Sequence record: MK250021.1
Length of the DNA: 64,000 bases
Strand: one strand, 5' to 3'
The notes under the pieces were generated by a model. That model saw only the letters and a program-made list of their open reading frames with translations. It was not told where the DNA came from and did no database searches. This document shows positions 5,252 through 56,799 of this stretch, in pieces. Numbering within the stretch: the stretch's first letter is position 1; each line of letters opens with the position of its first letter. Made by a program: the position numbers and the translations under genes.

Positions 5252-5257
5252 TTATAT

Positions 5258-5298
5258 AATTCCATATGTTAATAAATTTTAAACATATGGAATTTTTT
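5258..5298 (+). terminator. intrinsic terminator
   Basis: AATTCCATATGTT / AACATATGGAATT stem followed by T-tract just after the topoisomerase stop. Confidence 0.7.
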
Positions 5299-5314
5299 AT
5301 TATATAATAATGTG

Positions 5315-5325
5315 TGTATCTTTGT
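5315..5325 (+). promoter_or_regulatory. Bacteroidota-type -7 promoter element
   Basis: TGTATCTTTGT upstream of PRTase copy 1. Confidence 0.7.
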
Positions 5326-5357
5326 GATAATATATAAAATTAAATAAAAAATAAATT

Positions 5358-6302
5358 ATGAATAAAGAATTATTAAAAGAAAATATATCGGAATCCGTTA
5401 AAGATATATTAAAGAAATATAATATTAGTGATATTAATGAATCAAATATATTAATATCTATAAATAATTGTATAGATAATATATTTGAAGGAATAGATAT
5501 AGATCAAAGAAAACGACTTGTATCATTTAATCCAAATCATCAGAATTATGTAGATACAAATGATCCATGGAATCCAAAACCTATATATAATGAAGTAGAA
5601 GGTTATAAGGTAATTTCAATATTTAAACGTAAAGAAACTGAAGATAAACATGATGGAAATCCTGTTATATATGCACTTAAAGATATAAGAGGATGGAAAT
5701 TTAAAAATCCATCATATGACATATTTGCATTATTACGTAGATTTGTTTCAGTAACAAAAGAGCTTAAAGAAAATTTTGATGTTATTATTACCACACCATC
5801 TTCTAATAAATTAAATACCGAAGTTTTATATAGAATAAGGAGACTTATAAATCATGAAACATCATATGAGGATTTCTTTTATAAATATGGTGCTAATGAT
5901 GTGTATGAAAATTTTCTTGATACTAATTATCTAGAAACACATTATAATGAAGATGAGCAGGAACATATACATGATTTATTATATGAAGCAATTTCTAATA
6001 TGATGAAACCTAAAGAAAACAAAGGTAATGATGGTATTTTTTCTTATAAATTTATACCCCAACAAGAATTACGAAAATGTATTATAAAATCATTAGGCAT
6101 TAATAAATTGTATAAAGATGAAATAACATATGGTAAGTATTTAAATGGTAAGAAAATACTGGTTATAGATGATACAGTCACATCGGGTAAAACCATATCT
6201 GATTCGGCGACAGCAATAAAAGATATGTATGATCCAGAATCTATAACATTTTTAACTTTATTTTCACCATTAGAACGAAATAAAAATAATTTAGAAAAAT
6301 GA
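5358..6302 (+). CDS. phosphoribosyltransferase-fold protein, copy 1 (314 aa)
   Basis: Type I PRTase PRPP-binding loop [13 protein letters not shown]; TPSS motif; paralog of 9367..10293. Confidence 0.8.
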
Positions 6303-7177
6303 ATATTATAGATGGGAAATTAATATCAACTCAAATTAAAGAAGAAATAAAAAATGAAGTTGATAATATTATAAATAAAGGAGGACGACAACCACATCTT
6401 GTAGCAATAATAGTAGGTCATGATGGAGGATCTGAAACATATGTACGAAATAAAGTTAAAGCTTGTGAAGCATGTGGATTTAAAAGTACAGTATACCAAT
6501 ATGAAGATAATATATCAGAAGAAGATTTAATTAATAAAATTATATTATTAAATAATAATCCGAATGTAGATGGTTTTATAGTTCAACTTCCATTACCTAA
6601 ACATATTAATGAACAAAAAATAATTGAAACAATTGATTATAAAAAGGATGTAGATGGTTTTCATCCAATTAATGTAGGACGATTAAATATAGGTTTACCT
6701 TGTTATATATCAGCTACGCCAAAAGGTATTTTTGAATTATTGAAAAGATATAATATTGAAACAAAAGGAAAACATTGTGTTATTATTGGACGTAGTAATA
6801 TTGTTGGTAAACCTATGTCTACATTGATGGTTCAAAAACAATATGGAGATTCAACAGTAACAGTATGCCATTCACATACTGAGAATTTAAAGGAAATAAC
6901 AAAACATGCAGATATATTAATTGTAGCTCTTGGTAAACCTGAATTTGTAACTGCAGATATGATAAAAGAAAATGCAGTTGTTATTGATGTTGGTACAACA
7001 CGAATTCCTGATAATACAAAAAAGTCAGGATTTAGATTATGTGGAGATGTAAAATATAATGAAGTTGCACCGTTATGTAGTTATATTACACCTGTACCTG
7101 GAGGAGTCGGACCTATGACGATTGCAATGCTTATGCAAAATACATTATCTGCGTATAAACATGAAATATATGATTAA
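6299..7177 (+). CDS. folD: bifunctional methylenetetrahydrofolate dehydrogenase/cyclohydrolase
   Basis: [51 protein letters not shown] motifs. Confidence 0.95.
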
Positions 7178-7196: not shown

Positions 7197-7751
7197 ATGA
7201 CTATTATATTTTCAAATATGTTAGATCCAGATTGTCAAGTTATTAGAAATGCATGGCAAGGATTAGATAATATACATCTTATAGAAATAACACCAGATAT
7301 AGATGGTTATGAAGATATAGTTAATAATGCAATTATATCAGAAGATGATACTATATTATTTTTGGGACATGGTACAGCAAAAGGTTTATTATTTCCAAAT
7401 TTTAATAAAGAAAAATATTTATTACATGAATTTAATATAAATTTAGTTCATGCAAAAAATATAATATGTTGTTGGTGTTATGCATCAGATTTTGTAATTA
7501 ATAATAACTTACATAATACATTCTCAACATCTATGTTTATTTCTAATACAAATGAAGCAAATGATAATGGTATAGATAATTATACACAAAAACAAATTAA
7601 TATAAATGGTGAGAGATTTTATAGTAATATAAATCAATTATTGAAATATAATATACCATTGAATGAATGGGTAATGCAATTGGGTGCAAAGATGGATATT
7701 GAAAATGAAATAGATACATTTAATAGACAAGGATTATTTTATAAAGAATAA
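7197..7751 (+). CDS. hypothetical protein, possible caspase/gingipain-like (clan CD) fold
   Basis: Hydrophobic strand + GHG (ILFLGHG) and downstream strand + Cys (IICCWCYAS). Confidence 0.4.
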   Translation: MTIIFSNMLDPDCQVIRNAWQGLDNIHLIEITPDIDGYEDIVNNAIISEDDTILFLGHGTAKGLLFPNFNKEKYLLHEFNINLVHAKNIICCWCYASDFVINNNLHNTFSTSMFISNTNEANDNGIDNYTQKQININGERFYSNINQLLKYNIPLNEWVMQLGAKMDIENEIDTFNRQGLFYKE

Positions 7752-7786
7752 AAAAGGAAGATACAATAATAAGTATCTTCCTTTTT
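7751..7786. terminator. bidirectional intrinsic terminator
   Basis: AAAAAGGAAGATAC / GTATCTTCCTTTTT between convergent genes. Confidence 0.75.
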
Positions 7787-7791
7787 ATATA

Positions 7792-9252
7792 TTAAATTAA
7801 TTTACCTTTTATAATATCTTCTTTGATAATATTAAACAATTTTTCTCCAAAAGCATTTAAATCTTTAACAACACATGTATAAACTGCATCATCTGAATCT
7901 CTATAAGCATATGCATTATCAGATATATATTTGTTCCTATATGTATCAGATGGTGAAAGTTTTGTTAAATTAATTAATACATCAGATTTATTCATATCTG
8001 AACTTCCAGACTGTAAATAACATTGTATAATAAATTTACGCACATCGGTATTATAATATAATGATTTAATAGCTCCACTCCAATCATTATAATTAACATT
8101 AATTAATTTATCAGGATTATTCTTTAATATTTGCTTAATATTTTCTTTTACCCATTCAAAATAATTAGAAGGATTACTATCCATATTATATTTAATTAAA
8201 GTTTCTTCACTATGTTCTGCATTTCCTGATTCATCTCCCGTTTGTTTATATTTAATATAAGGTTTAACGATATATAAAAATACTCCTTTTGAAAATAATT
8301 TTATTATATTAGGCTTATTTTCAAAATATCTACATGCAGTGAAATTATATTTAAATAAATTATTTCCATCAAATTTTTCATTGAAATCACGTCGTCTTGC
8401 ATCTGGTGCGAATGACGCAGCTTCATTATGAATAAAACAATCATATGAATTTTCCTTTATATCAATAGTTAAATATTGATAAAATGTATCCCAACCTCTT
8501 TTTCTAGTGCCTACATTTTCATAAATTTCAAATAATACATCATTTGTACTTTTAAATAATTTATTAAAATTAACAATATCATTTTGAAGTAAACTGATAA
8601 GTTTATCAAAGTTCTATCCAGATTTTCTAACTAAACTATTTACATATTTTTCAATATCTACTTCACATTTATCAAATGCTTTGTTATAACTACCAACAAA
8701 ACTGGTTTTTAAATCATTGCTATCATATAATGATACAGGTATATGTTGTATAAGTGAATCTAGTATTGTAATATATTTTTTATTAATAGGTGAACGTTTA
8801 GCACGTGGTTTTGAAACATTAGGAGTTGAAATTACAGGTTCAGTTACACGTGTTTTTCTAGAAACCGGTTGTTTTTGTACAGGTTCAGATGAAATACCCA
8901 TATTAATATTATATAGCTATTGAATTTCTTCTATAGTTCCACCCAAATCTAATATTCTGTGTCCAAATAATTTGAATACTTTAATTTTATCTATATCTCT
9001 TTCACTTTTTGGACATGGTTTTTTCATAATAATTAAAGCTGCAACATATCTGTTAAGTAAATCATCCTTAGTAAGTTTCTTCATAGGTTTTACCAACTCA
9101 CATTCAGTAGCTTTATTTCTTGAACAAACTGACGCAACACTTAACCATAATTTCCTATCTAATGTTCTATGGTCAATACGTTTTGCCATTTCATTTAATG
9201 ATTTCTTTAAACTATATGATATACCATTCATTAATTCTTTATATAATGACAT
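7792..9252 (-). CDS. hypothetical protein (486 aa, 2 in-frame TAG), shares N-terminal domain with 39800..41425
   Basis: Track ORFs 8917..9252, 8614..8901 and 7792..8184 are one frame joined only by TAG at 8917 and 8614; homology to 39800 continues across the TAG (EEIQ*LYN vs EEIQALYN). Confidence 0.85.
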
Positions 9253-30583: not shown

Positions 30584-30681
30584 GGTTATGTTACATAATG
30601 GTTAATGAGGTATCTAATTGATATTTTAATATCAATGGAAGAAAGGTATTGCGGTGACGGGTTCGAGTCCCTCCATAACCA
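30584..30681 (+). tRNA. non-canonical tRNA-like gene with a hairpin inserted in the anticodon loop
   Basis: Perfect 7-bp acceptor GGTTATG/CATAACC plus discriminator A; D-loop AATGGTTA; T-loop TTCGAGT with a bulged stem; the anticodon loop holds about 30 nt including an ATTGATA/TATCAAT hairpin; anticodon not assignable. Confidence 0.6.
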
Positions 30682-30901
30682 CTCCTTATAATAATGAAAA
30701 GGATGCAATTATCTAACATAGATATTATTATAGTATAAGAAATTATGATAATTCTTAAAATGATAATCAAGAGATTGAAGTAACTAATTAATGTATAGTT
30801 ACTAAGGCGAAAGTATAACTGCAATTATATTAGTAGTTGGCGTTTAAAAGATTGAAGAAAATTATTTGCAGATAATTTTTGGATTGATATTAAATGTAAA
30901 A

Positions 30902-30995
30902 ATTATAATAGTGTAGCGGGAATGCACGTTCGATGATAAATCGGAAAGGGATTAACGGTATGACGTTATTAAGGGTTCGACTCCCTCTTATAAAC
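30902..30995 (+). tRNA. degenerate tRNA-like gene with long variable arm
   Basis: A/T-only acceptor (6 of 7 pairs), D-arm GTGT/GCAC, anticodon arm TTCGA-TGATAAA-TCGGA lacking U33, variable hairpin AACG/CGTT, T-arm GGG-TTCGACT-CCC. Confidence 0.55.
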
Positions 30996-42821: not shown

Positions 42822-43259
42822 TCAAAATAGTGCTTCACATTTATTCTCTTTTATCGGGCACCAATTCTCAAAATCCCATTTGAAAAAATCAGTACATATA
42901 ATATTATGATTTATAATATCTGTTATTTTATCTGTAATTTCAAAATTATATTTTTTTATTAGTTTTATTAATCTTTCTTTTAATTCTTCTGTATTATCAT
43001 CCATTAATTCTGTTGCATAACATGTATTTATTGCATTTTCTACATCTGAAATATTATTACAATTTTTTAATCTTTGTTCAACGACATATAAAAATATATT
43101 ACCTATACCTGCGCAAGGGTCTAAAAAAGTTTTAGAGAAATCTGTAAATACTTCTGGTGTTTCTTCACATAATTTTTCAACTATATGTATTGGCGTAAAA
43201 TCTTCTTGTGTTATATGATGTCGTTCTTTTCGTTTTTGATTTATATCTTGCTATAACAT
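42822..43259 (-). CDS. stand-alone SAM-binding half of a DNA amino-methyltransferase (145 aa, TAG at codon 3)
   Basis: QEDFTPIHIV (motif X), TFLDPCAGIGN (motif I), YATEL (motif II), IICTDFF (motif III); no NPPY. Confidence 0.8.
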
Positions 43260-43282
43260 TATAAATATTATTAATTTCTAAT

Positions 43283-43290
43283 TATTTATA
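43283..43290 (-). promoter_or_regulatory. T4-like late promoter motif TATAAATA
   Basis: Exact T4 late consensus 24 nt upstream of the ATG at 43259; the AT-rich background weakens significance. Confidence 0.4.
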
Positions 43291-43315
43291 TTAGAGAATA
43301 TTCATATTGTTTATT

Positions 43316-43387
43316 TGTAAGGGTTATGGTGATATGATGAAGGATCATATTTATAGAGAAGGAATTACAAAAACAAATAATAATACT
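43316..43387 (+). repeat. outer inverted repeat, left arm (72 bp)
   Basis: Perfect reverse complement of 44330..44401. Confidence 0.9.
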
Positions 43388-43544
43388 CACTACTGTTTTT
43401 TTGCAGATATATGTGCAATAACAGGTCATGGCAATGAAAAAGCAATGTTATCTAATACTGCATATAAAGTATGTAAATATGGCGAATATTTAAATAGATA
43501 TACTGAAACACTTTGTCGATTAAGTAATACAGATACTTATAAAG

Positions 43545-43620
43545 TATATGGTACTAAAGATGAATTAGAAAATTGGAAATATTTTGTTTTTAATAATAAA
43601 TTACCATTATTTCTTAATAT
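43545..43620 (+). repeat. inner inverted repeat, left arm (76 bp)
   Basis: Perfect reverse complement of 44016..44091. Confidence 0.9.
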
Positions 43621-43825
43621 CGTGTTGACAATAAATCAGCATAATAATTCAAAAGACTATGTACCATGGTTTACTAATAAAAAATACACAGATAGTGAAA
43701 TATATAAAATATTAAATATTAATAATATTGAGCAATTATTAATTAACAAAATAATAATTAAGTTTGAAAGAAATAATACATGGTTTAAAAGATATATAAT
43801 AGGTATGTGATCTATTATATATCTT

Positions 43826-45172
43826 TTATTTTCCGCATATATATCGTTTAAACCAATTTGAATTTCTTTCGAATTTTTTAATTATATTATCCATAAATAA
43901 GATTTCATCATTATTAATATTTAATATTTTATATATTTCACTATCTGTGTATTGTTTATTTACAATCCATGGCATATATTGTTTAACAACATTATTTTGA
44001 TTAATAATTAAACATATATTAAGAAATAATGGTAATTTATTATTAAAAACAAAATATTTCCAATTTTCTAATTCATCTTTAGTACCATATAAACAATCAG
44101 CTATTTTATTAGTTTGATGTTTACCTTTATCATATTTAAAGGGTTTAATGTTATTTATATTATTCATATAATAATGAAAACAAGGTGATGTATATGAAGT
44201 AATAAATGAACCATATTTATGATTACAAAAATTTGATTCAGCTTCAAATTTTCCACCAACTTGTGAAGATTCAATACCACATAAGCTTCCACCTGTTCCT
44301 CCAAGTATTTCTGGATATTTACAGTAATAAGTATTATTATTTGTTTTTGTAATTCCTTCTCTATAAATATGATCCTTCATCATATCACCATAACCCTTAC
44401 ACTTATTTAAAATACTTTGTATAATATCATAATTACCGATAAGATTACAATCATTTATATTATCAACAATTTGTTTATCACCACAATTAATAAATTCAAT
44501 ATTATTAAATTCTTGTGAATTATCTATAAAAGTTATTGAACATGGAACATATTGTGAAATATTAAATGATTTATTATAATTTTCAATTATAATTTTTTTA
44601 ACATGGTTTTTAATACGATTTTTTAAGGGAATATACCATTTTTTATTATTTGGTATATCTTTTCTTAAATTAATAAGCCATGTAGATGGCTCAATAATTG
44701 TCATTTTCCCATTATTATTTAATATATCTAATCCCTTATTAAAAAATTCTAAATGTAAATTTGTATTTCTATTTGGTCCAACATAAGGTGGATTCTGAAT
44801 AATATAATCAAATTTAGGCATATTTTTTATATTTAATTTTATATAATTAAATATATTTTCTGCATCATATATATTTGTATATTTTAAATAATATATATTT
44901 TTACATATTTTACTATATTCTTTATATGTTTTTAGCACAAATATATTAAACATTTTATTAATTAAATTATCAATATAATTATAATCAATATCATTAAATG
45001 TTAAAAATACAATTTTACCATTATTATCATATAAATATTTTTTTAATGTAATAGTTTGTTCAATAAATTCAACAGAATCTATTGTTCCAAATAAATTATT
45101 AATTTTATGTAAAATACATAAACATGTTTTTACATTATTAAAATTTGATAATTCAGAAAATATTTTAATCAT
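43826..45172 (-). CDS. DNA adenine methyltransferase catalytic + target-recognition subunit (Eco57I-like; 448 aa)
   Basis: FDYIIQNPPY (motif IV), LHLEF, GKMTIIEPSTW; no clear motif I. Confidence 0.85.
   Translation of the reverse strand: MIKIFSELSNFNNVKTCLCILHKINNLFGTIDSVEFIEQTITLKKYLYDNNGKIVFLTFNDIDYNYIDNLINKMFNIFVLKTYKEYSKICKNIYYLKYTNIYDAENIFNYIKLNIKNMPKFDYIIQNPPYVGPNRNTNLHLEFFNKGLDILNNNGKMTIIEPSTWLINLRKDIPNNKKWYIPLKNRIKNHVKKIIIENYNKSFNISQYVPCSITFIDNSQEFNNIEFINCGDKQIVDNINDCNLIGNYDIIQSILNKCKGYGDMMKDHIYREGITKTNNNTYYCKYPEILGGTGGSLCGIESSQVGGKFEAESNFCNHKYGSFITSYTSPCFHYYMNNINNIKPFKYDKGKHQTNKIADCLYGTKDELENWKYFVFNNKLPLFLNICLIINQNNVVKQYMPWIVNKQYTDSEIYKILNINNDEILFMDNIIKKFERNSNWFKRYICGK
44016..44091 (-). 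repeat. inner inverted repeat, right arm (76 bp)
   Basis: Matches 43545..43620. Confidence 0.9.
44330..44401 (-). repeat. outer inverted repeat, right arm (72 bp)
   Basis: Matches 43316..43387. Confidence 0.9.
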
Positions 45173-45183
45173 AGTTATATTAT

Positions 45184-45918
45184 TTATACTTTATATTTTA
45201 TAATATTATCTATTGTTTGTTTAAATTCTTCCCAGAAATCATAATCATTTATATAATCATTTATAGTATTTCCATCGATAATTATGAGGTTTTCATATAA
45301 AGAATTATTTTCAAATGCTCTTTTATATTCATTATAATAAGCGGATGTAAATAATATTAATGTTTTGTCTTTTGTATTTTCTGGTGTAATAGGTTTAATA
45401 AATCCATTTTTTGTACCTTGTGCTAATAATTTATCCATTATATCTGCATGAATATCAAATTTTTTGGATGTTCTAAATTTTACTTGTATTACTCCATTTT
45501 TATTTTCTCCTAAACCTCTTCTATTTAATAAACATACAGCATCTACTCCATAATCTTTATAACTTTCTGGTGGTAAACATATATATTTAAATATATATGT
45601 TTCTACAGTATCTTTATCTTTTACGTGAATACTTATACTTTTAAAATAATTTAAAAATATAATACAGAATAATTCAAAAATATATCCTTTAAATTGTTCT
45701 TGCTCATCAATTATATTATTTTTTATTAATATATTATTTGTATATTCTGTAAAATCATCTATTGTATTAAATGATGTTATATCAGATAAATATTTTATAT
45801 TTAATATTATATTTAATATTTTTCGAGGTATACTTGTACTTTTATTTCTATACGTACTTTTATCTCTCCATCTTTTCAAAAAATTATCAAATGCATATAA
45901 TTCTTTAATATTAATCAT
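45184..45918 (-). CDS. PD-(D/E)XK restriction endonuclease-like subunit (Mrr-like; 244 aa)
   Basis: GYIFELFC...DYGVDAV...GVIQVKFR. Confidence 0.75.
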   Translation of the reverse strand: MINIKELYAFDNFLKRWRDKSTYRNKSTSIPRKILNIILNIKYLSDITSFNTIDDFTEYTNNILIKNNIIDEQEQFKGYIFELFCIIFLNYFKSISIHVKDKDTVETYIFKYICLPPESYKDYGVDAVCLLNRRGLGENKNGVIQVKFRTSKKFDIHADIMDKLLAQGTKNGFIKPITPENTKDKTLILFTSAYYNEYKRAFENNSLYENLIIIDGNTINDYINDYDFWEEFKQTIDNIIKYKV

Positions 45919-47576
45919 ATATCTATATTATTCTGTTTAAGAACTTCTTTAATTACATTAAGTCTATCTGTTTCATTAAATAAATTTAATGTATTTATAT
46001 TTGTTGATAAAGTAGCAAAATTACACATTTTATATATACTATTTAAATTTATATATCCACCATTTATTTTTAATTCTTTAACAACAGGAATAATTCTATT
46101 TTTAAGTTCTTCTTGCAAATTTAGTTTTAATTCATCTATACGTTGTTTAATTTCTATGATTGGCGATTTTTCCTTATAATCTGTTGTATTATAATTATCA
46201 TATCGTTTTAATGGATTTTTTGGATGTGAAATATTATCAGATATATTATCATATAAAATATTATCTATACCATAATATTCAACAATTGTACTTGATATAT
46301 TTTTATTATATTCATCATTACCATTAGATACTATATATACATTAGCGAATTTTTTAATTCTATCATTATATGATTTCCCTCTTTCTCCTGAGTTTGTTCT
46401 CAAGCAACGACCAATTATTTGTATAATTCTATTTTTTGAATCGCTATCACCATTTGTATTATTGACTATAATGCAATCAGATATTGATTTAATATCAATC
46501 CCTTGAATAAGTTTTCGACAATGAAATATTATACAATTATCATTATATGAATCTACTTTATTACAAAAATCATTAATTTCGTAATCATCATCAGATGTAT
46601 TTTTAAAACATTTATAATATTTTGAACATTTATTGTATAATTCTGTTGCTTGCTGTCTACTAAAACATGTAACTAATAATTTATTATTTTTTGTATTTTT
46701 TGATTTAATAGCATCATTCATACAGGCAATTATAATTTTATCAGTAATAATACCATTTGAAGTGATATTAAATTTTACATATGGTTTTATTATAATATTA
46801 TCTTTAATTGCATTATCTGCAGATATATTTACAATACGTTCATCTTCTGGAACGTTTATTTTACCTGATAATTTATTTTTATTTATAATATTATTAAATA
46901 GTTTTACAAAAATACTTGGTGTTGCAGAAAAACCATATAATTTATAACTATTTTTTACTAATTTATCAAAATTTATATTATTTGAAAATAAATTTGTAGT
47001 ATTATCTATTACAGTATGACATTCATCAATATATGTAATTAAATCTACTTTCTTTTTATTAATTTTTACATTATCAATAAATTTATATAATGATTTATTA
47101 CATGATGAAACTAAAGCAATATCATAATCGCTATTTTCAAAATTATCTAATACAGTCTTAGACGATTTTGAATTATTATATAATTGATAAATTTCTATAT
47201 TATTATTAATATTATCATTTACAGGTTTTTCATATATTCTTGTTTCATCTGATGAATTTAATATTAATAATAATTTATAATTATTTAATACATTATTACA
47301 TTTTCCTAATACATTTAAAAAATCAGTAAATGTTTGGACATTTAAATTTAATATGTGTGAACATATACAAATAATAAGTTTCTTGGATGCCTTTTTATTT
47401 TGTATATTGTATATACAATCATCAAATATATATCCAGATTTCCCATATCCAGTAGGCATAACAACTGTACCAAAATTCCTACCAGTAGATGCAATAATAT
47501 CAATTTTTCTTAATCCATTATTAAATGAATCTATATACCATTGCATTTTATTGTCTATATTATTTGTTGTATTCAT
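45915..47576 (-). CDS. SF2 DExH helicase/translocase (Type III/ISP Res-like; 553 aa)
   Basis: MPTGYGKS, IDECH, FSATP, KLIQGID, QIIGRCLR. Confidence 0.85.
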   Translation of the reverse strand: MNTTNNIDNKMQWYIDSFNNGLRKIDIIASTGRNFGTVVMPTGYGKSGYIFDDCIYNIQNKKASKKLIICICSHILNLNVQTFTDFLNVLGKCNNVLNNYKLLLILNSSDETRIYEKPVNDNINNNIEIYQLYNNSKSSKTVLDNFENSDYDIALVSSCNKSLYKFIDNVKINKKKVDLITYIDECHTVIDNTTNLFSNNINFDKLVKNSYKLYGFSATPSIFVKLFNNIINKNKLSGKINVPEDERIVNISADNAIKDNIIIKPYVKFNITSNGIITDKIIIACMNDAIKSKNTKNNKLLVTCFSRQQATELYNKCSKYYKCFKNTSDDDYEINDFCNKVDSYNDNCIIFHCRKLIQGIDIKSISDCIIVNNTNGDSDSKNRIIQIIGRCLRTNSGERGKSYNDRIKKFANVYIVSNGNDEYNKNISSTIVEYYGIDNILYDNISDNISHPKNPLKRYDNYNTTDYKEKSPIIEIKQRIDELKLNLQEELKNRIIPVVKELKINGGYINLNSIYKMCNFATLSTNINTLNLFNETDRLNVIKEVLKQNNIDI

Positions 47577-47619
47577 AATCCTTTATATTTAATTGTTTAT
47601 TATTCATTTATTAATAATG

Positions 47620-47629
47620 CAAAGATACA
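47620..47629 (-). promoter_or_regulatory. Bacteroidota-type -7 promoter element
   Basis: TGTATCTTTG upstream of the helicase. Confidence 0.65.
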
Positions 47630-47685
47630 TATTATTTTCTAAAATAAAAAATGATAGATTAGAAAATCTATCATTTTAATATTAT

Positions 47686-48153
47686 TTAAGAAAGAAATAC
47701 TTTATAAATATCTTTCGCTAATTTATTTCTATCTTCTTCATTATTAATAAAGTTAGTCATGATATAATCTATCAATCCTTCATAACTATGAAAATTAACA
47801 CTTCTAATTCTCATAATTTCTTTTACTTGCTCTTCATTCAGATATTCATCCATAATCCAATCAAACAATGCTGGTATATCATCAGGTTTCATAAAATTAA
47901 TAATGATATTAAAATAACTCGCATCTAACTCAATAGCTCGGTTACAAAATGAACTGTACTTACCGTAATTTCCATTTTTGAAATCTTCTTCACTCAACGG
48001 GCCTTCTCCGGTAAGTCTTCTGGAAACTACATATCGCCTAATTGCCTTGTTCATATCCTTTATAGACTTACTCATTCTCAAACCATCATCATTCTTATCG
48101 ATGAGTTTCTGAACTCTATCAAAATCTTTTTTCTCTACATTAGTGTAAATCAT
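47686..48153 (-). CDS. hypothetical protein (155 aa)
   Basis: Open frame; weak resemblance (RYV....L...P.SE.D) to the shared domain of 9252/39800. Confidence 0.7.
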   Translation of the reverse strand: MIYTNVEKKDFDRVQKLIDKNDDGLRMSKSIKDMNKAIRRYVVSRRLTGEGPLSEEDFKNGNYGKYSSFCNRAIELDASYFNIIINFMKPDDIPALFDWIMDEYLNEEQVKEIMRIRSVNFHSYEGLIDYIMTNFINNEEDRNKLAKDIYKVFLS

Positions 48154-49320: not shown

Positions 49321-51264
49321 TCAACCTTTAATATTTTGTATAATCTTATCCCGTTCTTCTTTCGTTATTATAACAACATATTCTTTATTGGAACCAAAAT
49401 GAGATCTGTTTGTCAACGTTTCTTTTATATATGGCACATATTTTGTAATCAAATCATCTGTCACAAACAAATATTTCTGACAATCATAATTCTTAAGACA
49501 AATATCTATCCATCTGTCACATCCTCTGTTAACAGACTCTACTCCAGGCCAATTTTCAATATTTCCATATGGCGAACATGTCAACAAACATTGGTATTTA
49601 CCAGTATTCTTACAACAATCTGCAATTCCTAAATCACATGTAACATTAACTAATAAATCAGAATCAATTATAGGTTTCAAAAACTTATATATCTCCTTAC
49701 TTTCCTTAACACTTGATTCACATAAATCTCTACCTATATATGATTTATTACATGCCAATGTTCCTATCATTCTTCCACTATATCCCGAGAACGGATCAAA
49801 TATTGTATCAAATTCATTAAGATATTTCTTTATAAGATATTTTGCTAAATCCGGTTTGAAATATGTAACAGTCTGAAACATCCTAGATGCATTCAATCCA
49901 ATTCCATATATAAAATCAGGAACATAACATAAATCAATATATTTCCTATGTTCTTCTGATTTATACCAATCAGCAAATTTCAATCTATTACATAATAACT
50001 TCCTGAATAATTCCTTATCATTTTTAATCATATTCCATCCATCAAAAGGTGAAACACTATTTTCAATATGTGCATATATAATAGACTTATGAAACATCTT
50101 AATAATCTTGGATGGTGTCTTCAAATTCCTATCCTTTGATTTTATATATTCAAATTCCTTGATACAATCTAATTCTGTAACAGGATGAACAGTAGAAGGT
50201 GGGAAATATATATTCTGAATTTTTTCAAACTCTCTATCTAAATACTTATCGACAATCTCATTAACATGTGCGGATGTAGCATTAGCGCTCTTACACATAT
50301 TTTCTTCTGTCTCTTCTTCACCGTTAATCAATACAGGTTTGTATTTAGGCTTACTTAATAAATCAGATATAGGTGTATTCTTATCAACTATTTTTTCTTT
50401 TTTCTTTTCTGATTTAATATCTAAACTATTTGTCTCAGTCTTAATAGGAAATACATCATTGATACTTGATGTTTTTTTCGTTTCCTTATCCTTATTATGA
50501 ATTGATTTCTTTAATTTCTCCTGCTTTTCTTTTTCTATATCAATCTTATCTTGTTTCTCAATAATCTCATTTATATTATCATCAACAGTATACTTAATCA
50601 ATAGTGTCGGAATATATTTAAATCTTGGAGCCTTACTGGAACAACTTGTTGAACAATATTTAGTATACAACTTTGTATTCTTACCAACCCAAATAACAGG
50701 TTTTCCACATACGGGACATGTAGGTTTTTCTTCTACGCCTTTCCTTATTCGTTGAACAGTTTCCAATATAGATGCAGAATCTTTATATCTATTATTAAGA
50801 TAATCCAATATGTACTTATTAGTAATCAATGGAACATATTTATCATATATGATATGATTCTTAATAATATAATCATTCATTTCATCTAATTCAGTAATTG
50901 AATTCTGCCAATCTACGAATTTTGAATCCCTGTGTTTAGCAATCTCAAAACTATCCTTGTATTTTTCACGAGTCATAGAAGCATGCATCGCTTTACATAT
51001 ATAAGATCCACATGTAGTTTTGTATCCGTTTCCTATACGTCCACTCCATTCTGCTTTCTTACTGCAATACTTACATGTTACTATCTCATGCAAATCATGA
51101 ATAACATAATAAAGTCTCTCTAATATATCTTCATCATTCTTTAAAAAATCTGTAAACTCATATACTTCTTTATTAATATCTTCATGATTTCTAACTATAT
51201 ATATTAATTGTCTTAAACTTATTTCATTATTATTATATTGCTTTATATAATCATTTAATTGCAT
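49321..51264 (-). CDS. Zn-finger/DNA methyltransferase fusion (647 aa)
   Basis: Two CxxC...CxxxC modules, then IFDPFSGYSGR (motif I), YIGRD, LLTCSPY (SPPY-like motif IV). Confidence 0.75.
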   Translation of the reverse strand: MQLNDYIKQYNNNEISLRQLIYIVRNHEDINKEVYEFTDFLKNDEDILERLYYVIHDLHEIVTCKYCSKKAEWSGRIGNGYKTTCGSYICKAMHASMTREKYKDSFEIAKHRDSKFVDWQNSITELDEMNDYIIKNHIIYDKYVPLITNKYILDYLNNRYKDSASILETVQRIRKGVEEKPTCPVCGKPVIWVGKNTKLYTKYCSTSCSSKAPRFKYIPTLLIKYTVDDNINEIIEKQDKIDIEKEKQEKLKKSIHNKDKETKKTSSINDVFPIKTETNSLDIKSEKKKEKIVDKNTPISDLLSKPKYKPVLINGEEETEENMCKSANATSAHVNEIVDKYLDREFEKIQNIYFPPSTVHPVTELDCIKEFEYIKSKDRNLKTPSKIIKMFHKSIIYAHIENSVSPFDGWNMIKNDKELFRKLLCNRLKFADWYKSEEHRKYIDLCYVPDFIYGIGLNASRMFQTVTYFKPDLAKYLIKKYLNEFDTIFDPFSGYSGRMIGTLACNKSYIGRDLCESSVKESKEIYKFLKPIIDSDLLVNVTCDLGIADCCKNTGKYQCLLTCSPYGNIENWPGVESVNRGCDRWIDICLKNYDCQKYLFVTDDLITKYVPYIKETLTNRSHFGSNKEYVVIITKEERDKIIQNIKG

Positions 51265-51393: not shown

Positions 51394-53049
51394 ATGAACA
51401 CTATTCAAGAAATATTTACCAATGATATAATAAAAGGATTAAAAGAAACTTATATAATAGATAATGAAATAAAATCAAAATCATTAATTAAAAAATCTGT
51501 ATTTAATAAATTTCCTGAATTTTATAATGTATATAAACAACATTTTTCTGAAGATGAATTCAGAGAAATACTTTATTGTATATTAAAAGATATTCCTACT
51601 ATACCTAAATGTAAAAATCCTAATTGTAACAATAACACGAAATTACGGAATTTCAAAATAGGATTTCAACAATGTTGTTGTAAAGAATGTACAGCAGAAT
51701 ATCAACATTTGTCTAATGAGCATGCTGATAAATGTAAACAAGGTGCATTGAAACATTATGTCAATATACATAAAGTAGATTCATATACAGAAAATATGAA
51801 CTGTGATTATTCAAAACCAAATTATTATATATTCAATAATTATTGTATTCATGGTAATATACCGGTTTATAAAACTACGGCAAATAAAATACATGAATAT
51901 AATAACGGAACATTCTGTATTCAATGTAACAAAAACATAATAGATACATATATACCTACAGAAAAAGAAATAAATGAATTCCAAAAGATATTTCCTGAGT
52001 TTTATAAGAAATATTCACATAATATGAAATATAAATGGTGGTTAACTTATTTTCCTAAATATTATAAAATTCTAATAACTTATTTTGAAAAATATGTAGA
52101 ACCAGTTAATGATAATATAGTTATGAAAGAAGTATATTATCAATTTCTTCATGATTTAAAAGGAAGACCACATTGTTGTATATGTGATACTAAAGTTTCA
52201 TTTTCACCAACAGCAAATGAATATAGAAAATTCTGTGATAAACACTTATATGGATTTAATAAATCATCTCAAGAAATAGAATTAGGAAAATTTATTGATT
52301 CATTAAATTTAAATGTAATTAAAAATACACAAGATATTATTAAAGGTGAATTGGATTTTTATTTTCCTAATAATAATGTTGCTATAGAATATAATGGCTG
52401 TTGGTGGCATTCCGATAAATTTAAAACAAAAAATTACCATTATAATAAATGGAAACAATGTAAAGATAAAGGAATTCAATTAATATTCATATGGGAAGAT
52501 GATCTCTTATATAAAAGAGATATAGTATATTCACTTATTAAATCAAAATTAGGAATATATAATATCAGAATATATGCAAGGAAAACAATAATTAAAGAAG
52601 TTCCTTATAATATAGCAAAAGAATTTATAAATAAAAATCACCTTCAAGGATATTCGATAGATAAAATACGATTAGGACTTTATTATAATGATGAATTAAT
52701 TTCAATAATGACATTTGGTAAATCCAGATTCAAATCTGATAATGATGATATAGAGATAATAAGATTTTGTAATAAACTTAATTATCAAATAATTGGAGGC
52801 GCCAGTAAATTATTTTCACATTTTAAAAAACATTATGATTATAAAAATATTATCAGTTATGCAGAATGTGATATATCAAACGGTAAACTTTATGAGAATC
52901 TTGGAATGACTTATATAAGCAGAAGTGATAATTGGAAATGGATGTATAAAGGAATAAGATATAATAGATTAAATAAAATTAAAGATTCTGAACATAAACA
53001 AGATTTAGTTAAATGTTATAGTGCAGGAATTTTAAAATATAAATTATAA
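51394..53049 (+). CDS. Hef-like putative homing endonuclease (Zn fingers + Vsr-like nuclease + C-terminal domain; 551 aa)
   Basis: ELDFYFPNNNVAIEYNGCWWHS...IFIWEDD; IYARK...NHLQG...GGASKL...ISYA. Confidence 0.75.
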   Translation: MNTIQEIFTNDIIKGLKETYIIDNEIKSKSLIKKSVFNKFPEFYNVYKQHFSEDEFREILYCILKDIPTIPKCKNPNCNNNTKLRNFKIGFQQCCCKECTAEYQHLSNEHADKCKQGALKHYVNIHKVDSYTENMNCDYSKPNYYIFNNYCIHGNIPVYKTTANKIHEYNNGTFCIQCNKNIIDTYIPTEKEINEFQKIFPEFYKKYSHNMKYKWWLTYFPKYYKILITYFEKYVEPVNDNIVMKEVYYQFLHDLKGRPHCCICDTKVSFSPTANEYRKFCDKHLYGFNKSSQEIELGKFIDSLNLNVIKNTQDIIKGELDFYFPNNNVAIEYNGCWWHSDKFKTKNYHYNKWKQCKDKGIQLIFIWEDDLLYKRDIVYSLIKSKLGIYNIRIYARKTIIKEVPYNIAKEFINKNHLQGYSIDKIRLGLYYNDELISIMTFGKSRFKSDNDDIEIIRFCNKLNYQIIGGASKLFSHFKKHYDYKNIISYAECDISNGKLYENLGMTYISRSDNWKWMYKGIRYNRLNKIKDSEHKQDLVKCYSAGILKYKL

Positions 53050-53051
53050 TT

Positions 53052-54749
53052 ATGGAATTAAATTTAGATGAATATAGAAAAGATTTCAATATAAAAAGAT
53101 TTAATAATTTATTACGATACCATGAAGATTTATTAGATACATTAAAAAAGAAAACATCATTTTTAGATGAACATAATCCGGAGAAATCTGAACGTGTATA
53201 TTGTTGGTATAATAATATAACAGAAATTCAAAAATGTCCTCATTGTGGTAAATCTAGAAAATTCCATAAATTTCCTGTTGGTTATTTTCCTACATGTGGT
53301 ACAAAGGAATGTAGAGCAAAATCAGTTGCATATGGAAATAAATATCACCATGACTTTAAAGAAATTCAGAAAAAGATGAGAGAAACATATGCGAAAAATC
53401 ATAATGGAATTACACATAATATGCAAGATCCTGAATTTAAGAAAAAATTCTTTGAAGATTTTAAGAAGAAACATAATGGTGCATCATGTGGTGTTCAAAC
53501 AGAATTAGCAAATAAGAATAGAGAAAAATCAACATTAGAAAAATATGGTGTTAAATGTGCATTAGAATCAAAGGAAGTTCGTAATAAAATATATGAAAAA
53601 TATGGGAATAATGCACATAAAGTAATTACTGATAAATCAGCAAAAGCTAGAAAAATAAATTCATTAAATGATATTATTAAAAAAATATCAGAAATGAATT
53701 ATACATATATTTCTAATAATAATGATACATTTCAAATTAAATGTAATAAATGTGGTCATATAAATGAAATTAATAGACAAGCAATAAATTATTATTACAG
53801 AAATATAAAGCATATATATTGCAATAAATGTGAATATAAAGAATTAATGTTTAGGAGTAATTTTGAAAAAGATGTTGTAAATGAAATTGGTAAATTAATA
53901 AAAGATACAAAATATTCTATATTAACTAATAAACATATTTATAATGGTAAGGAACATTATGAAGTAGATATATTAATTCCTGAATTAAATTTAGCAATAG
54001 ATTGTAATGGTTTATATTGGCATTCTGAATTACAAAAATCAGATAATTATTATCATTATAAAAAGAAAGAATTTATAGAAAAATTAGGTTATTCTTTAAT
54101 TTNNNNNNNNNNNNNNNNNNNNNATGATATTAATAAGAAAGAAATTATATTAAGTCGTTTATCTAGTAAATTAAAATTAAATAAACATGTATATGCAAGA
54201 AAATGTATAATTAAAGAATTAACTCCTAAATTATATAGAGATTTTTGTAATGAAAATCATTTACATGGATCTGTTAATGCATCTATAAAAGTTGGATTAT
54301 ATTATAATAATGAATTAGTTGAAGTAATAGGATTAGGTAAATCTCGAAACTTAATAGGACATAATAAAGACACTGTTTCATATGAGCTATTACGTTTATG
54401 TACAAAAAAATATATTAATGTTATTGGTGGTTTTTCTAAATTAATGAAATATATTATTACTAATTTTAATATATCATCTATATATAGTTATGCTGATTTA
54501 TCATGGATTGATTTAAAAGGATCATCATATATTAATAGTGGATTTATTATAGATAAAATAATAGATAATGAATATTGGTGGGTAGTTAATAATATAAGAG
54601 AAAATCGTTTGAATTATACTAAAAATAAATTAGTATCATTAGGATATGATAAGAATTTAACAGAAATAGAAATTATGCATTCATTAAAACATTATAGAGT
54701 ATTCGGCCCTGGTAATTTAAAATTTATATATAAAAAGAAAAGTCTCTAA
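53052..54749 (+). CDS. Hef-like putative homing endonuclease, tandem paralog (565 aa; spans the N gap)
   Basis: EVDILIPELNLAIDCNGLYWHS; VYARK...NHLHG...GGFSKL...YSYAD; KYGV-like repeat. Confidence 0.75.
   Translation: MELNLDEYRKDFNIKRFNNLLRYHEDLLDTLKKKTSFLDEHNPEKSERVYCWYNNITEIQKCPHCGKSRKFHKFPVGYFPTCGTKECRAKSVAYGNKYHHDFKEIQKKMRETYAKNHNGITHNMQDPEFKKKFFEDFKKKHNGASCGVQTELANKNREKSTLEKYGVKCALESKEVRNKIYEKYGNNAHKVITDKSAKARKINSLNDIIKKISEMNYTYISNNNDTFQIKCNKCGHINEINRQAINYYYRNIKHIYCNKCEYKELMFRSNFEKDVVNEIGKLIKDTKYSILTNKHIYNGKEHYEVDILIPELNLAIDCNGLYWHSELQKSDNYYHYKKKEFIEKLGYSLIXXXXXXXXDINKKEIILSRLSSKLKLNKHVYARKCIIKELTPKLYRDFCNENHLHGSVNASIKVGLYYNNELVEVIGLGKSRNLIGHNKDTVSYELLRLCTKKYINVIGGFSKLMKYIITNFNISSIYSYADLSWIDLKGSSYINSGFIIDKIIDNEYWWVVNNIRENRLNYTKNKLVSLGYDKNLTEIEIMHSLKHYRVFGPGNLKFIYKKKSL
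54103..54123. other. assembly gap (21 N)
   Basis: Run of N inside 53052..54749; the paralog suggests a WEDD-type motif falls here. Confidence 0.95.
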
Positions 54750-54795: not shown

Positions 54796-56799
54796 TCAAA
54801 GACCTGCAACATCTACACAGAATGTAAGATATTGTGTTTCTGGATAGAAACCAGCGTCTACAAGAGCATATCTTGATTTTATCATAAGCTTAGGACTCAT
54901 TGTACCTTCTGCAATAATCTGAACTGATTCAGCCATTACATATGGACAGAAGTGAACACCTGGTTCATCCTTGCCACCCTTACGACCAACAAGTACACGG
55001 TTATCAGAACCACCCATAAGAGGGTCAACATAGATTGTCAAACCGAACATACCACCGATTGGATAAAGTGAACCGCCATTCTGAGAAATAGTGTTAGCAA
55101 CAGGTGAGAATGTATAGTTAGCGTTACTCTGAAGGAGTGTAGCGATTGTGATGTTAGTTACAGCGAATGTAGCTGCACCATAACGACCTCTCTGAAGAAT
55201 CCAGTTAGAAGCAGCCAAGAAGTTAACAGCAAGTCTCTTAAGAAGAGTATCACGGTTTTCGAAAGCTGCGCCAGAAGGAATATACATTGGCTTGTATGGA
55301 AGAGCAACATTTACATAGCTCTTATAAGCAACACCAGTTGCATCATTCATATCTGACTGAGGAATTGCAAGAGCAGGAGTCATACGAACACCAGAAGTTG
55401 CAGTATAAGAAGGATCGAAGCTAAGATTCAAGTTAGCTGCAGGACCTTCAACCTCAACAAGTTTGTAATGGTTCTTCCAACCAAGAGCGAACAAACGAGA
55501 TGTGATGTGACGGTTAATAGTTGCAGAAAGCTCGTTGATACCAGCATTCTCTACCATCTTGATAACATCGATACCCCATTGTTTCTGAAGGTCTGTTACC
55601 TGTTCCTGTGTTACAGCGCAACCCACCATAATTGTACCAACCTGTACGTTCTTTGTGAACAACTGAAGTGAAAGTTGACGAGCCATTGTTTGCTCACCAG
55701 TACCACGACTCATTGGTTCATAAAGTGTTGTACCATCCTGATATGTACCATACCAAGCGTCACGATCACGCTCACCAGCACCTGTGAAACCTTGAATTTG
55801 ATCCTCAAGCATTGAGATAAGACGAGGAGCGTGAAGTGTAAGAACTACATTTACTTCCTCAGAAGAACCAACTGGAGTATAAACTGCAGTAAAATCAAGT
55901 GAACCACCATTGAAATATGCACCAAGTGACTGTGTACCAGAAACCACCTTGAACATAGGATCACCATCGATACGAGACCAACCAATGAACTCAACTACAA
56001 GTTCGTTAGAAGCACCTACATGTGGATGAGAAGAATCGAAATCTACAAAATCAGATGCAGATACAAGTGTTGTACCAGCAGGCATTGCAGAAGCACCCTT
56101 CAACATACGCTTAATCTGTGCAGGAGACAACTTAACAGCAGTAGAAGAATCTGTTGTAGAACCATCAGCAACAGTAGCCTCACCAGGAGCAATAGAAGCC
56201 TTGAATGAATGAGGAAGACCATACATCTCGAAAGGAGCGTTAGTCTGAGAGTTAGCCTGAGGATTCTGTGTACGAGCTGAATAAGCAGGAGTAGCACCAT
56301 AAGGTTGCTTTGAACCTGAATATACATAATCCATATAAGGAAGAACACCGGTAGGACCATCAAGTGGAGTTGTGTTTACAAGTTCGAAACCGATAGTCTT
56401 AGCAGCGACCTTAAGAGCAAGAGGTAACAAAGTAGGATACTTGTCACCAGAACCAAGGTTCTTGTTATCAGCGTAGTCAGCGCCAGTCAAAGCAGGTTTG
56501 CCAGCAGGAACTGGATCACCAACACCGAGTGTATTATAAAGGTTGTTATATGGTTGATATGTACCACCGAACTGTGAATATGCGTTAGATGGCATTACGA
56601 ATGCATCCTCATTCAACTTTGCTGTATTATGTGCAAGCTGAGACATCCAAGCAAGTTTATCAGCATCTTCAACACCTGTGATTTTCTTAATAGTAGGTGC
56701 CCATGATTCATAGATAGCTTTGTCGCTATTCTTAGCAGTTGCACGATTTACATATGATTCGTAAGCCTATGCAACAGACTTATTACTTTTTACTTTCAT
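54796..56799 (-). CDS. major capsid protein, T4 gp23-like (667 aa; single TAG at codon 11)
   Basis: LLPLALKVAAKTIGFELVNTTPLDGPTG, AGINELSATINRHI, YCPY-like HFCPY, SRYAL; upstream frame is open to ATG 56799 (MKVKSNKSVA*AYESY...ESWAPTIKK), matching the gp23-like propeptide. Confidence 0.92.

Follow-up and report, generated by a model that had tools for sequence, protein, structure and literature searches.

A switchable operon of helicase, nuclease and predicted two-piece DNA methylase in the megaphage Lak-B2

Restriction-modification (R-M) systems of the Type ISP, such as LlaGI and LlaBIII, combine an Mrr-like nuclease, an SF2 ATPase, an N6-adenine methyltransferase of the gamma/Eco57I kind and a recognition domain in a single polypeptide, in that order. 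In Type III systems, such as EcoP15I, the Res subunit is an SF2 helicase with a C-terminal PD-(D/E)xK nuclease, and specificity resides in the beta-class methyltransferase subunit Mod, which carries the recognition domain, and this specificity is used for cutting too. Specificity can also be switched by DNA inversion, as in the hsdS genes of Type I systems of S. pneumoniae (SpnD39III), Bacteroides fragilis and Mycoplasma pulmonis, in which silent partial specificity genes lie in inverted orientation and recombination between inverted repeats within coding sequence reshuffles recognition-domain halves and thereby the methylation specificity (PMC7672463, PMC7394358, PMC7641763). Catalytic domains built from two polypeptides are found in the bacterial cytosine-5 methyltransferases M.AquI and M.EcoHK31I. 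Circular permutants of methyltransferases have been made in the laboratory (PMC5944983). The operon described here, which is encoded by the giant gut phage Lak-B2, shares traits with each of these systems, and its DNA-recognition end is exchanged by a natural DNA inversion.

The four genes and the inverted cassette

The window, which is the whole stretch of DNA that was analysed, comprises 64,000 nucleotides of Prevotella phage Lak-B2 (MK250021, positions 1-64000). The locus has the following features:

45915-47576 (-), SF2 (ResIII-type) helicase/translocase, 553 aa, no in-frame TAG
45184-45918 (-), Mrr-like PD-(D/E)xK nuclease, 244 aa, its start overlapping the helicase stop (ATGA)
43826-45172 (-), predicted large methyltransferase subunit, 448 aa, with a Rossmann-like N-terminal extension without a glycine motif (residues 1-120, predicted), NPPY (motif IV) at residues 127-130 (44783-44794), and the C-terminal recognition domain from about residue 247
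43307-43810 (+), silent cassette, an alternative 3' end of the large-subunit gene, tail-to-tail with it and with different variable segments
43388-44329 (no strand), invertible segment, in the opposite orientation in Lak-B7
43316-43387 (no strand), outer perfect inverted repeat, left arm, 72 bp
44330-44401 (no strand), outer repeat, right arm, 72 bp, inside the expressed gene (residues 258-281)
43545-43620 (no strand), middle perfect inverted repeat, left arm, 76 bp
44016-44091 (no strand), middle repeat, right arm, 76 bp
43683-43726 (no strand), inner perfect inverted repeat, left arm, 44 bp
43910-43953 (no strand), inner repeat, right arm, 44 bp
42822-43259 (-), predicted small methyltransferase subunit, 145 aa, with motifs X (FTP), I (FLDPCAGIGN, 43098-43127), II and III, and an in-frame TAG at codon 3 (43251-43253) read as Gln

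The frame of the small protein is open only if this TAG is read as Gln, which is justified, as Lak phages are reported to use code 15, neighbouring frames in the window carry 2-8 in-frame TAGs, and with this reading the coverage by ORFs of 100 aa or more rises from 82% to 91% without more ORFs. The observation on which the original prediction rested, namely a minus-strand helicase, nuclease and NPPY methyltransferase without motif I, followed beyond an inverted cassette by a separate small protein with motifs X and I-III, is thus confirmed, with NPPY only a few residues away from where it had been placed. None of this is chance, as each of the proteins has many homologues with E-values below 1e-40.

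The helicase contains the motifs PTGYGKSG, DECH (II), SAT (III) and QIIGRCLR, with motifs I, II, III and VI visible and intact, and 42 homologues carry Pfam PF04851 (ResIII), PF00270 (DEAD) and PF00271 (Helicase_C). In the nuclease, E82, D122, D126 and Q145-x-K147 are invariant in 7 homologues, Atlas feature and structure matches are to Mrr_cat and Mrr_cat_2 clusters and to a viral cluster in which this fold is fused to a ResIII helicase, and one source names the homologue of Lak Sonny an Mrr domain protein, whereas a profile search against PDB sequences found nothing. The 448-aa protein has 532 homologues (Pfam Eco57I) and no FxGxG, and its AlphaFold2 model (pLDDT 92, pTM 0.91) is structurally closest to CamA, HsdM, M.TaqI, M.BseCI and MmeI, with Z 11-14. 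The family profile of the 145-aa protein matches motifs X-I of HsdM, M.BseCI, CamA and PglX. The motif sets of the two proteins are thus complementary, with motif IV onward and the recognition domain in the large protein and motifs X and I-III in the small one.

Conservation of the gene pair and of the operon

The split is not a local accident. In 17 of 19 independent loci, covering every type of N-terminal extension, the NPPY core gene is directly followed by a homologue of the small protein, so that the synteny of the small gene in relatives, the absence of which had been named beforehand as a refutation, could be confirmed. These loci include the cultured Aeromonas phage Ah1 (gp104, gp103) and cyanophage P-SSM2 (PSSM2_036, PSSM2_037). 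In unrelated 38-kb phage contigs, a homologue of the small protein (44% identity, E 4e-36) starts 2 nt after a 334-aa core that begins MQFDYIIQNPPY. Of the 150 best representative clusters of the small protein, 145 are 260 aa or shorter (median 156 aa), and nearly all are therefore stand-alone. Single-chain fusions also exist, in the order core then small: in the homologues P0219 and P0277 the core is at the N-terminus and the small module at the C-terminus, and phrog_11371 matches the core at profile positions 2-154 and the small protein at 282-381. In addition, a protein of 1189 aa at locus L018 (L numbers denote loci of the survey) is a helicase fused to the core.

The four genes form one conserved operon, in which only 11 nt separate the nuclease and methyltransferase genes. 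The order helicase, nuclease, core, small occurs in six distinct versions, and the helicase lies directly upstream of the nuclease and methyltransferase in Lak Sonny, L007, L008, L012 and L028. A ResIII helicase recurs next to the pair in unrelated lineages (L014, L022, L023, P-SSM2). On the other hand, Lak-B1, B3, B6 and B9 carry at the same site a split methyltransferase with its own inverted cassette but no helicase or nuclease, many small phages have the pair without these two genes, and in L001, L013, L017, L024 and L027 the pair occurs without a recognisable helicase.

Whether the large protein requires the small one is less certain. The original prediction held that the methyltransferase must assemble from two proteins, but the 448-aa protein does not simply lack its N-terminal half, as AlphaFold2 gives residues 1-120 a beta-alpha-beta-alpha-beta fold that aligns with the strand 1-3 half of HsdM, TaqI and CamA. 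This is a cryptic, motif-less half, which would occupy the place that the small subunit should fill, so that the large subunit might be self-sufficient or the small one might act differently; obligatory assembly is therefore likely but unproven for this protein. The roughly 335-aa relatives that start at NPPY, by contrast, lack a cofactor-binding half of their own. A prediction of the complex of the two Lak proteins gave no answer, and the predicted fold of a natural fusion was too poor to use. The small subunits of Lak Sonny and L007 have lost the GxG of motif I, whereas the small protein keeps canonical motifs X and I in B2, L008 and L012.

Inversion of the recognition domain

The original prediction treated the inverted cassette as an obstacle, but it is the most interesting part of the locus, a recognition-domain inversion switch. 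The cassette matches the core HMM at positions 129-322 (E 1e-53), and an exact-match scan revealed three nested perfect inverted repeats that bracket alternative, far more diverged segments of the recognition domain, with one set in the expressed gene and one in the silent cassette. Lak-B7 is Lak-B2 with exactly this segment flipped: positions 43316-44401 align at 100% identity in reverse orientation between collinear flanks, the crossover lies within the outer repeat, and the cassette is in Lak-B7 joined to the expressed gene, with both frames open in both states. Both orientations thus occur in nature, one in Lak-B2 and Lak-B8 and the other in Lak-B7, although only this one inversion event, at the outer repeat, is directly seen in this lineage. 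Cassettes occur in four different alleles, including L012 and the Lak-B3 allele, and the silent cassette of L008 is 99.4% identical to the C-terminus of P0007, a homologue that is expressed in another sample. The variable segments lie in the domain that aligns with the DNA-recognition domains of CamA, TaqI and BseCI. No recombinase was found within about 6 kb, among the ORFs from about 36.4 to 56.6 kb, to which the search in the 550-kb genome was confined.

Interpretation and relation to known systems

It is more likely than not that the locus encodes an ATP-dependent, restriction-modification-like module of four proteins with a DNA-inversion switch on its specificity. In this view, the methyltransferase is a gamma-type N6-adenine enzyme, the catalytic domain of which is divided between two genes, with motifs IV-VIII and the recognition domain in the large subunit and the cofactor half (motifs X, I, II, III) in the small subunit encoded downstream, and the two most likely form one catalytic domain. 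Recombination at the three nested repeats would flip one, two or all three variable segments into the expressed gene, giving up to eight variants, which would change the sequence that is methylated, and the phage can thus probably change which DNA sequence it marks as its own. The helicase and the nuclease, translated from the same operon, probably use the same recognition subunit, as in Type I, Type III and Type ISP enzymes, and would attack DNA that lacks the mark, such as host DNA or competing phages, so that cutting and marking would switch together. The gene content, the conserved pairing, the fusions and the existence of both orientations are demonstrated by the analysis, whereas expression, the physical assembly of the subunits, methylation, frequent and reversible switching within one population, the change of specificity, and restriction with any ATP-driven translocation and cleavage are inferred from sequence and predicted structure alone. 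The original interpretation as a disassembled Type ISP-like enzyme is therefore only partly supported: the operon, the pairing and the modules are as proposed, but the system is not a Type ISP member, as it is not one chain and its gene order differs, and Type III fits the content equally well.

A less likely but possible alternative is that the split methyltransferase is an orphan that protects phage DNA from host restriction, with the inversion switch hedging between hosts of different R-M specificities, while the helicase and nuclease are neighbours with a separate job in recombination, replication or host DNA breakdown and are not guided by the methyltransferase. The Lak genomes and other loci that have the pair without these genes indicate that the methyltransferase can act as an orphan and that restriction is not needed to explain it, but the overlapping or abutting genes in six versions of the operon, the recurrence of a ResIII helicase in unrelated lineages and its fusion to the core in L018 speak against it.

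It is rather improbable that the 448-aa protein is a complete methyltransferase with a divergent cofactor half (a cryptic motif I) and that the small protein is in Lak phages a leftover, a regulator or a competitor rather than an obligatory half. The predicted model does have a full seven-strand class I fold, F28-G29 after strand 1 and N60/D63 after strand 2 are invariant within the Lak-type extension, and the small subunits without GxG would agree with this, but the small gene is kept intact and next to the core in every lineage with an N-terminal extension, the extensions are unrelated in sequence between lineages, are absent in about a third of the homologues, which start at NPPY, and have no glycine-rich loop of the usual form in the Lak type, and canonical motifs are retained in several small proteins.

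That the cassette and the 145-aa gene are debris of a duplicated methyltransferase gene, and the B2/B7 difference a one-off rearrangement or an assembly artefact, given that Lak genomes are metagenome assemblies and 72-bp inverted repeats can mislead short-read assemblers, is very unlikely although only one event is seen, because three repeat pairs are perfect between far more diverged segments, which indicates ongoing exchange, both frames stay open in both states, and cassettes occur in four alleles, one of them found expressed in another sample.

A more far-reaching reading remains tentative. A lytic megaphage would carry a self/non-self nuclease system that it can reshuffle by inversion into up to eight recognition-domain variants, and its methyltransferase would be a natural, widespread two-gene intermediate of circular permutation, in which the catalytic half and the cofactor half assemble in trans while the large subunit keeps a decayed copy of the old cofactor half. 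If this is true, phages use phase-variable epigenetic marks in conflicts with hosts and rival phages, which has so far been described only for bacteria.

Compared with Type ISP enzymes, the same four modules are present, including the Mrr-like nuclease and the SF2 ATPase, but here as four separate proteins in the order helicase, nuclease, methyltransferase with recognition domain, cofactor half, with a predicted methyltransferase that is itself divided and a switchable recognition domain. Like in Type III Res, the helicase is followed by a PD-(D/E)xK nuclease, and the order of motifs across the two methyltransferase genes (IV-VIII, recognition domain, X, I-III) is that of beta-class Mod, but Res is divided into two overlapping genes (fused forms exist in other phages), Mod is divided into two as well, the methyltransferase genes lie downstream and not upstream, and the fold and sequence of the core resemble the gamma-class enzymes CamA, TaqI and HsdM rather than beta-class Mod. 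Like in invertible hsdS loci, a silent partial gene lies in inverted orientation with inverted repeats within coding sequence, but the switch acts on a recognition domain fused to the methyltransferase core and not on a separate S subunit, it is found in a lytic megaphage and not in a bacterium, and no invertase was found among the neighbouring ORFs. In contrast to the cytosine-5 enzymes M.AquI and M.EcoHK31I, the pair belongs to an amino-methyltransferase family that is widespread in phages and split between motifs III and IV with swapped gene order, and such a split-gene state is a plausible intermediate of circular permutation. The best structural matches over both the catalytic and the recognition domain are CamA, the orphan adenine methyltransferase of Clostridioides difficile, M.TaqI and M.BseCI (Z 12.5-13.4, about 280-320 residues aligned), which, however, are single-chain enzymes with a canonical motif I, and sequence identity is only 11-18%.

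Gene content of the operon and its genetic code

Lak megaphages are reported to read TAG as glutamine, which is code 15 (preprint 10.1101/2021.08.26.457843; PMC11165621), and the sequence of Prevotella phage Lak-B2 (MK250021.1, positions 1-64000), which the region matches at 100% identity with the same coordinates and the major head protein of which is shared by all Lak genomes, agrees with this. Frames beside the locus carry 2-8 in-frame TAGs and become long ORFs only under code 15, and coverage by ORFs of at least 100 aa rises from 82% to 91% without any increase in ORF number, which is why code 15 was used where needed. The locus consists of four minus-strand ORFs and one plus-strand frame:

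45915-47576, minus strand: 553-aa ORF, predicted SF2 helicase
45184-45918, minus strand: 244-aa ORF, predicted Mrr-like nuclease, whose start overlaps the previous stop as ATGA
43826-45172, minus strand: 448-aa ORF, predicted large methyltransferase subunit
43307-43810, plus strand: an inverted, diverged copy of the last third of the 448-aa gene, lying in the 566-nt gap before the next ORF
42822-43259, minus strand: 145-aa ORF, predicted small methyltransferase subunit, open only if the TAG at codon 3 is read through

The helicase has motifs I, II (DECH), III and VI, and its 42 homologues carry Pfam ResIII, DEAD and Helicase_C. The 244-aa protein has only six close homologues, in which E82, D122, D126, Q145 and K147 are invariant, and searches of a protein atlas by features and by structure place it with Mrr_cat and Mrr_cat_2 proteins and also match it to a viral cluster in which the same fold is fused to a ResIII helicase. 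The 448-aa protein has 532 homologues, many of them with Pfam Eco57I, NPPY is invariant at residues 127-130, and there is no FxGxG. The family profile of the 145-aa protein matches motifs X-I of HsdM, M.BseCI, CamA and PglX/BrxX. By contrast, single-sequence searches of the four proteins against PDB sequences, NCBIfam and PADLOC gave nothing or only marginal hits, and a profile of the nuclease against PDB also gave nothing. The original prediction had described a minus-strand run of helicase, Mrr-like nuclease and NPPY methyltransferase without motif I, with a separate 145-aa protein carrying motifs X and I-III beyond an inverted cassette, and this description is correct.

The TAG at 43251-43253, codon 3 of the 145-aa gene, is the only one in frame in the operon, as the helicase, nuclease and large subunit have none in 1,245 codons, while neighbouring genes have 1-8. 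The small subunit can therefore be made only once TAG is read as Gln, which might delay methyltransferase activity. It was examined whether this TAG is a conserved timing device, but it is present in Lak-B2, Lak-B7, the related locus L007 and the Lak-B3 allele and absent in Lak Sonny, in the Lak-A-like genome L008 and in the related locus L012, and thus it is not a family feature. Promoter scans were no better than for shuffled sequence, and the two terminator-like sites that were found do not fall between genes. The G+C content falls to 19-21% over the operon (44001-48000), against 22-33% in the flanks, which fits an island with a separate history.

In the surroundings of the operon, a 647-aa ORF without TAG at 49321-51264 (minus strand) has a C-terminal region (about residues 464-572, containing DPFSGYSG) that weakly matches Type II methyltransferase models and phrog_12517, and this may be a second methyltransferase 1.7 kb from the operon. 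Two adjacent paralogous genes at 51394-53049 and 53052-54749 (plus strand) resemble HNH homing endonucleases (phrog_3339, E 1e-83 and 1e-88) and lie next to a major-head-protein-like gene at 54796-56646. Further away, ARAGORN calls two unusually long tRNA-like genes of 99 and 94 nt at 30584-30682 and 30902-30995 (plus strand), Ile(GAT) and Tyr with the odd anticodon ATA, which may contain introns or be false calls in AT-rich DNA.

Conserved pairing of the core and the small subunit

The split of the methyltransferase is a family trait. Homologues of the large protein share a conserved core that begins at M(P)KFDYIIQNPPY, and about a third of them are roughly 335 aa long and start at that methionine, whereas the rest carry N-terminal extensions of several unrelated kinds. 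In unrelated 38-kb phage contigs, a 334-aa core is followed 2 nt later by a 131-aa protein that is 44% identical to the Lak small protein and ends just after motif III. When all collected loci were scanned with HMMs for core, small subunit, helicase and nuclease, the core was found to be directly followed by a small subunit in 17 of 19 independent loci, whatever the type of extension. The same pair is present in two groups of cultured phages, namely in Aeromonas phage Ah1 (3282-5459 of locus L025), where gp104 is accompanied by gp103 that is annotated as a DNA methyltransferase, and in Prochlorococcus phage P-SSM2 (2897-3857 of locus L026), where PSSM2_036, which starts MKFTLAIGNPPY, is accompanied by PSSM2_037, and a helicase and a dam gene follow within 3 kb. 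In such cultured T4-like phages, the genes are mostly annotated as hypothetical. A pattern-limited scan of 185,579 species genomes gave only two matches to the small subunit, a 4.9-kb contig binned with a Candidatus Aphodosoma MAG (L028), which holds the whole four-gene operon, and a 360-kb contig labelled Bacilli MAG (L027), which holds the core-small pair, and both may be phage contigs binned with bacteria.

An exhaustive search with the small protein found 712 representative clusters (E up to 0.001), and of the best 150, 145 are 260 aa or shorter and therefore stand-alone, whereas the few long ones carry the module at their C-terminus. Two of those long proteins, P0219 and P0277, begin with the NPPY-type core, and PHROG family 11371 matches the core at its start and the small protein at its end, so the two genes are fused in some phages in the same order in which they lie here. 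The small protein ends about 17 residues after motif III, which is where the strand bearing NPPY would begin in an ordinary gamma-class enzyme. Taken together, this is strong genomic evidence that the core and the small protein work as one enzyme.

For the Lak protein itself, a caveat has to be made. AlphaFold2 with 119 sequences gave a confident model of the 448-aa protein (pLDDT 92, pTM 0.91), in which residues 1-120 form strand-helix-strand-helix-strand-helix ahead of the NPPY strand, and the whole N-terminal 246 residues align with the catalytic domains of HsdM (Z 14.4, 199 residues), CamA, TaqI and BseCI, from a point near their motif I onward. On its own, the predicted extension resembles Rossmann-type nucleotide-binding domains, but it has no glycine-rich loop, and only F28-G29 and N60/D63 are invariant at the places where cofactor contacts would sit. 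In the model, the large subunit thus already fills the place that the small subunit should take. Either the extension is a decayed or placeholder half that the small subunit displaces, or the large subunit is self-sufficient, or the model over-completes the fold. The first possibility seems most likely, because every lineage with an extension still keeps an intact small gene, but this is inferred from the genomes alone. Profile-profile comparison detected no homology of the small subunit with the Lak extension, nor with the 'ILIIGN' type of extension, and only extensions of the P0077 type weakly match motif X of the small family, so the idea that the extension is a decayed copy of the cofactor half remains unproven for Lak. 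The complex prediction for the 448-aa protein with the 142 residues of the small protein that follow the TAG codon, folded without alignments, had a score of 0.00 and counts neither for nor against binding, and an AlphaFold2 model of the natural single-chain fusion P0219, meant to show a composite catalytic domain, was too poor to use (pLDDT 63, pTM 0.45). The small subunits of Lak Sonny (7365-7832 of locus L005) and L007 (7419-7816) read DPCAGVFY and DPCAGIFY where others have DPCAGIGN, so that the second glycine of motif I is lost, and the L007 copy is also broken by a run of N and a frame change.

The pair of NPPY core and following cofactor half is common in phages and offers a natural test of how circular permutation of methyltransferases arises. 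In practice, annotation pipelines that look for complete methyltransferases will miss both halves, and phage methylation capacity is therefore under-counted.

The inverted cassette in its two orientations

The inverted cassette appears to be a working switch, and it is found in both orientations. Lak-B7 is identical to Lak-B2 across this locus, except that 43316-44401 is present in reverse orientation at 100% identity between collinear flanks, and the crossover lies within the outermost of three nested perfect inverted repeats that were revealed by an exact-match scan, whereas Lak-B8 has the B2 orientation. The repeat pairs are:

43316-43387 and 44330-44401: 72 bp, outer pair
43545-43620 and 44016-44091: 76 bp, middle pair
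43683-43726 and 43910-43953: 44 bp, inner pair

These pairs separate three pairs of diverged segments, which correspond to residues 282-360, about 387-406 and about 422-448. Recombination at any pair would flip the segments inside it, giving up to eight combinations. Both reading frames stay open in both observed states, and the perfect identity of the repeats beside strongly diverged segments suggests repeated exchange. The two orientations are known from different genomes, and a search for sequencing runs gave none for the locus and only one weak match (0.04 of sampled words) for the invertible part.

The design recurs in other alleles. The Lak-A-like genome L008 has a 518-nt inverted repeat, and its silent cassette is 99.4% identical to the C-terminus of a full-length expressed homologue from another sample. 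Also L012 has a cassette, as has the different allele in Lak-B3, whereas Lak Sonny and L007 have none, and there the small gene abuts the large one. The Lak-B3 allele (3829-6714 of locus L010, which is MK250022 38082-48379) is a replacement at the same site and holds a 450-aa large subunit with an 'IVIFGN..G' type extension, an inverted cassette with an 88-nt repeat that is 95% complementary, a 104-aa ORF and a 158-aa small subunit, with no helicase or nuclease.

The variable segments lie in the C-terminal domain that aligns with the DNA-recognition domains of CamA, TaqI and BseCI, and they are also the least conserved part of the family alignment. A change of methylation specificity is therefore the likely consequence, although this is inferred. 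If the variants methylate different sites, a single megaphage lineage could hedge between hosts with different restriction systems, and it could also change the mark by which it tells its own DNA from host or rival DNA.

A possible restriction function and the relation to known systems

The order helicase-nuclease-core-small, with overlapping or abutting genes, occurs in six distinct versions, which are Lak-B2/B7/B8, Sonny, L007, L008, L012 and L028. A link of helicases to the methyltransferase is further indicated by ResIII helicases that lie next to the pair in the loci L014, L022 and L023, by a helicase two genes beyond the pair in P-SSM2, and by locus L018, where a helicase is fused to the core in one 1189-aa protein. 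Against an obligatory link, Lak-B1, B3, B6 and B9 carry at the same site a different split methyltransferase with a cassette but without a helicase or nuclease, the alleles of B1, B6 and B9 being identical to that of B3. Lak-B4, A2 and C1 share mainly the small gene, so the site holds at least four alleles, and Lak-A1 lacks the locus altogether. The locus is thus a variable island, and its left junction lies inside the conserved 3' end of the small gene.

True restriction of unmarked DNA is considered about as likely as not, and the main rival is an orphan protective methyltransferase whose switch hedges between hosts. The gene content, the conserved pairing with its natural fusions and the two orientations of the cassette can be read directly from the sequences, whereas the assembly of the two subunits, their methylation activity, the change of specificity and any restriction are inferred. 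The original prediction of a disassembled Type ISP-like enzyme, whose methyltransferase must assemble from two proteins, is therefore only partly supported: the pairing argues for a joint function of the two proteins, but a need for assembly is not shown.

The Lak papers that were read gave no description of this locus, and full-text searches of a literature collection that does not cover every journal gave no description of a phage-borne inversion switch on a methyltransferase, of specificity switching by inversion that acts on a recognition domain fused to the methyltransferase, or of split amino-methyltransferases of this kind. The module content equals that of Type ISP enzymes, and also that of a Type III system with both Res and Mod cut in two, but membership in either family fails on architecture. 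Specificity switching by inversion is known for bacterial Type I systems, and the closest known mechanisms are the hsdS inversion systems of these enzymes (PMC7672463, PMC7394358, PMC7641763).
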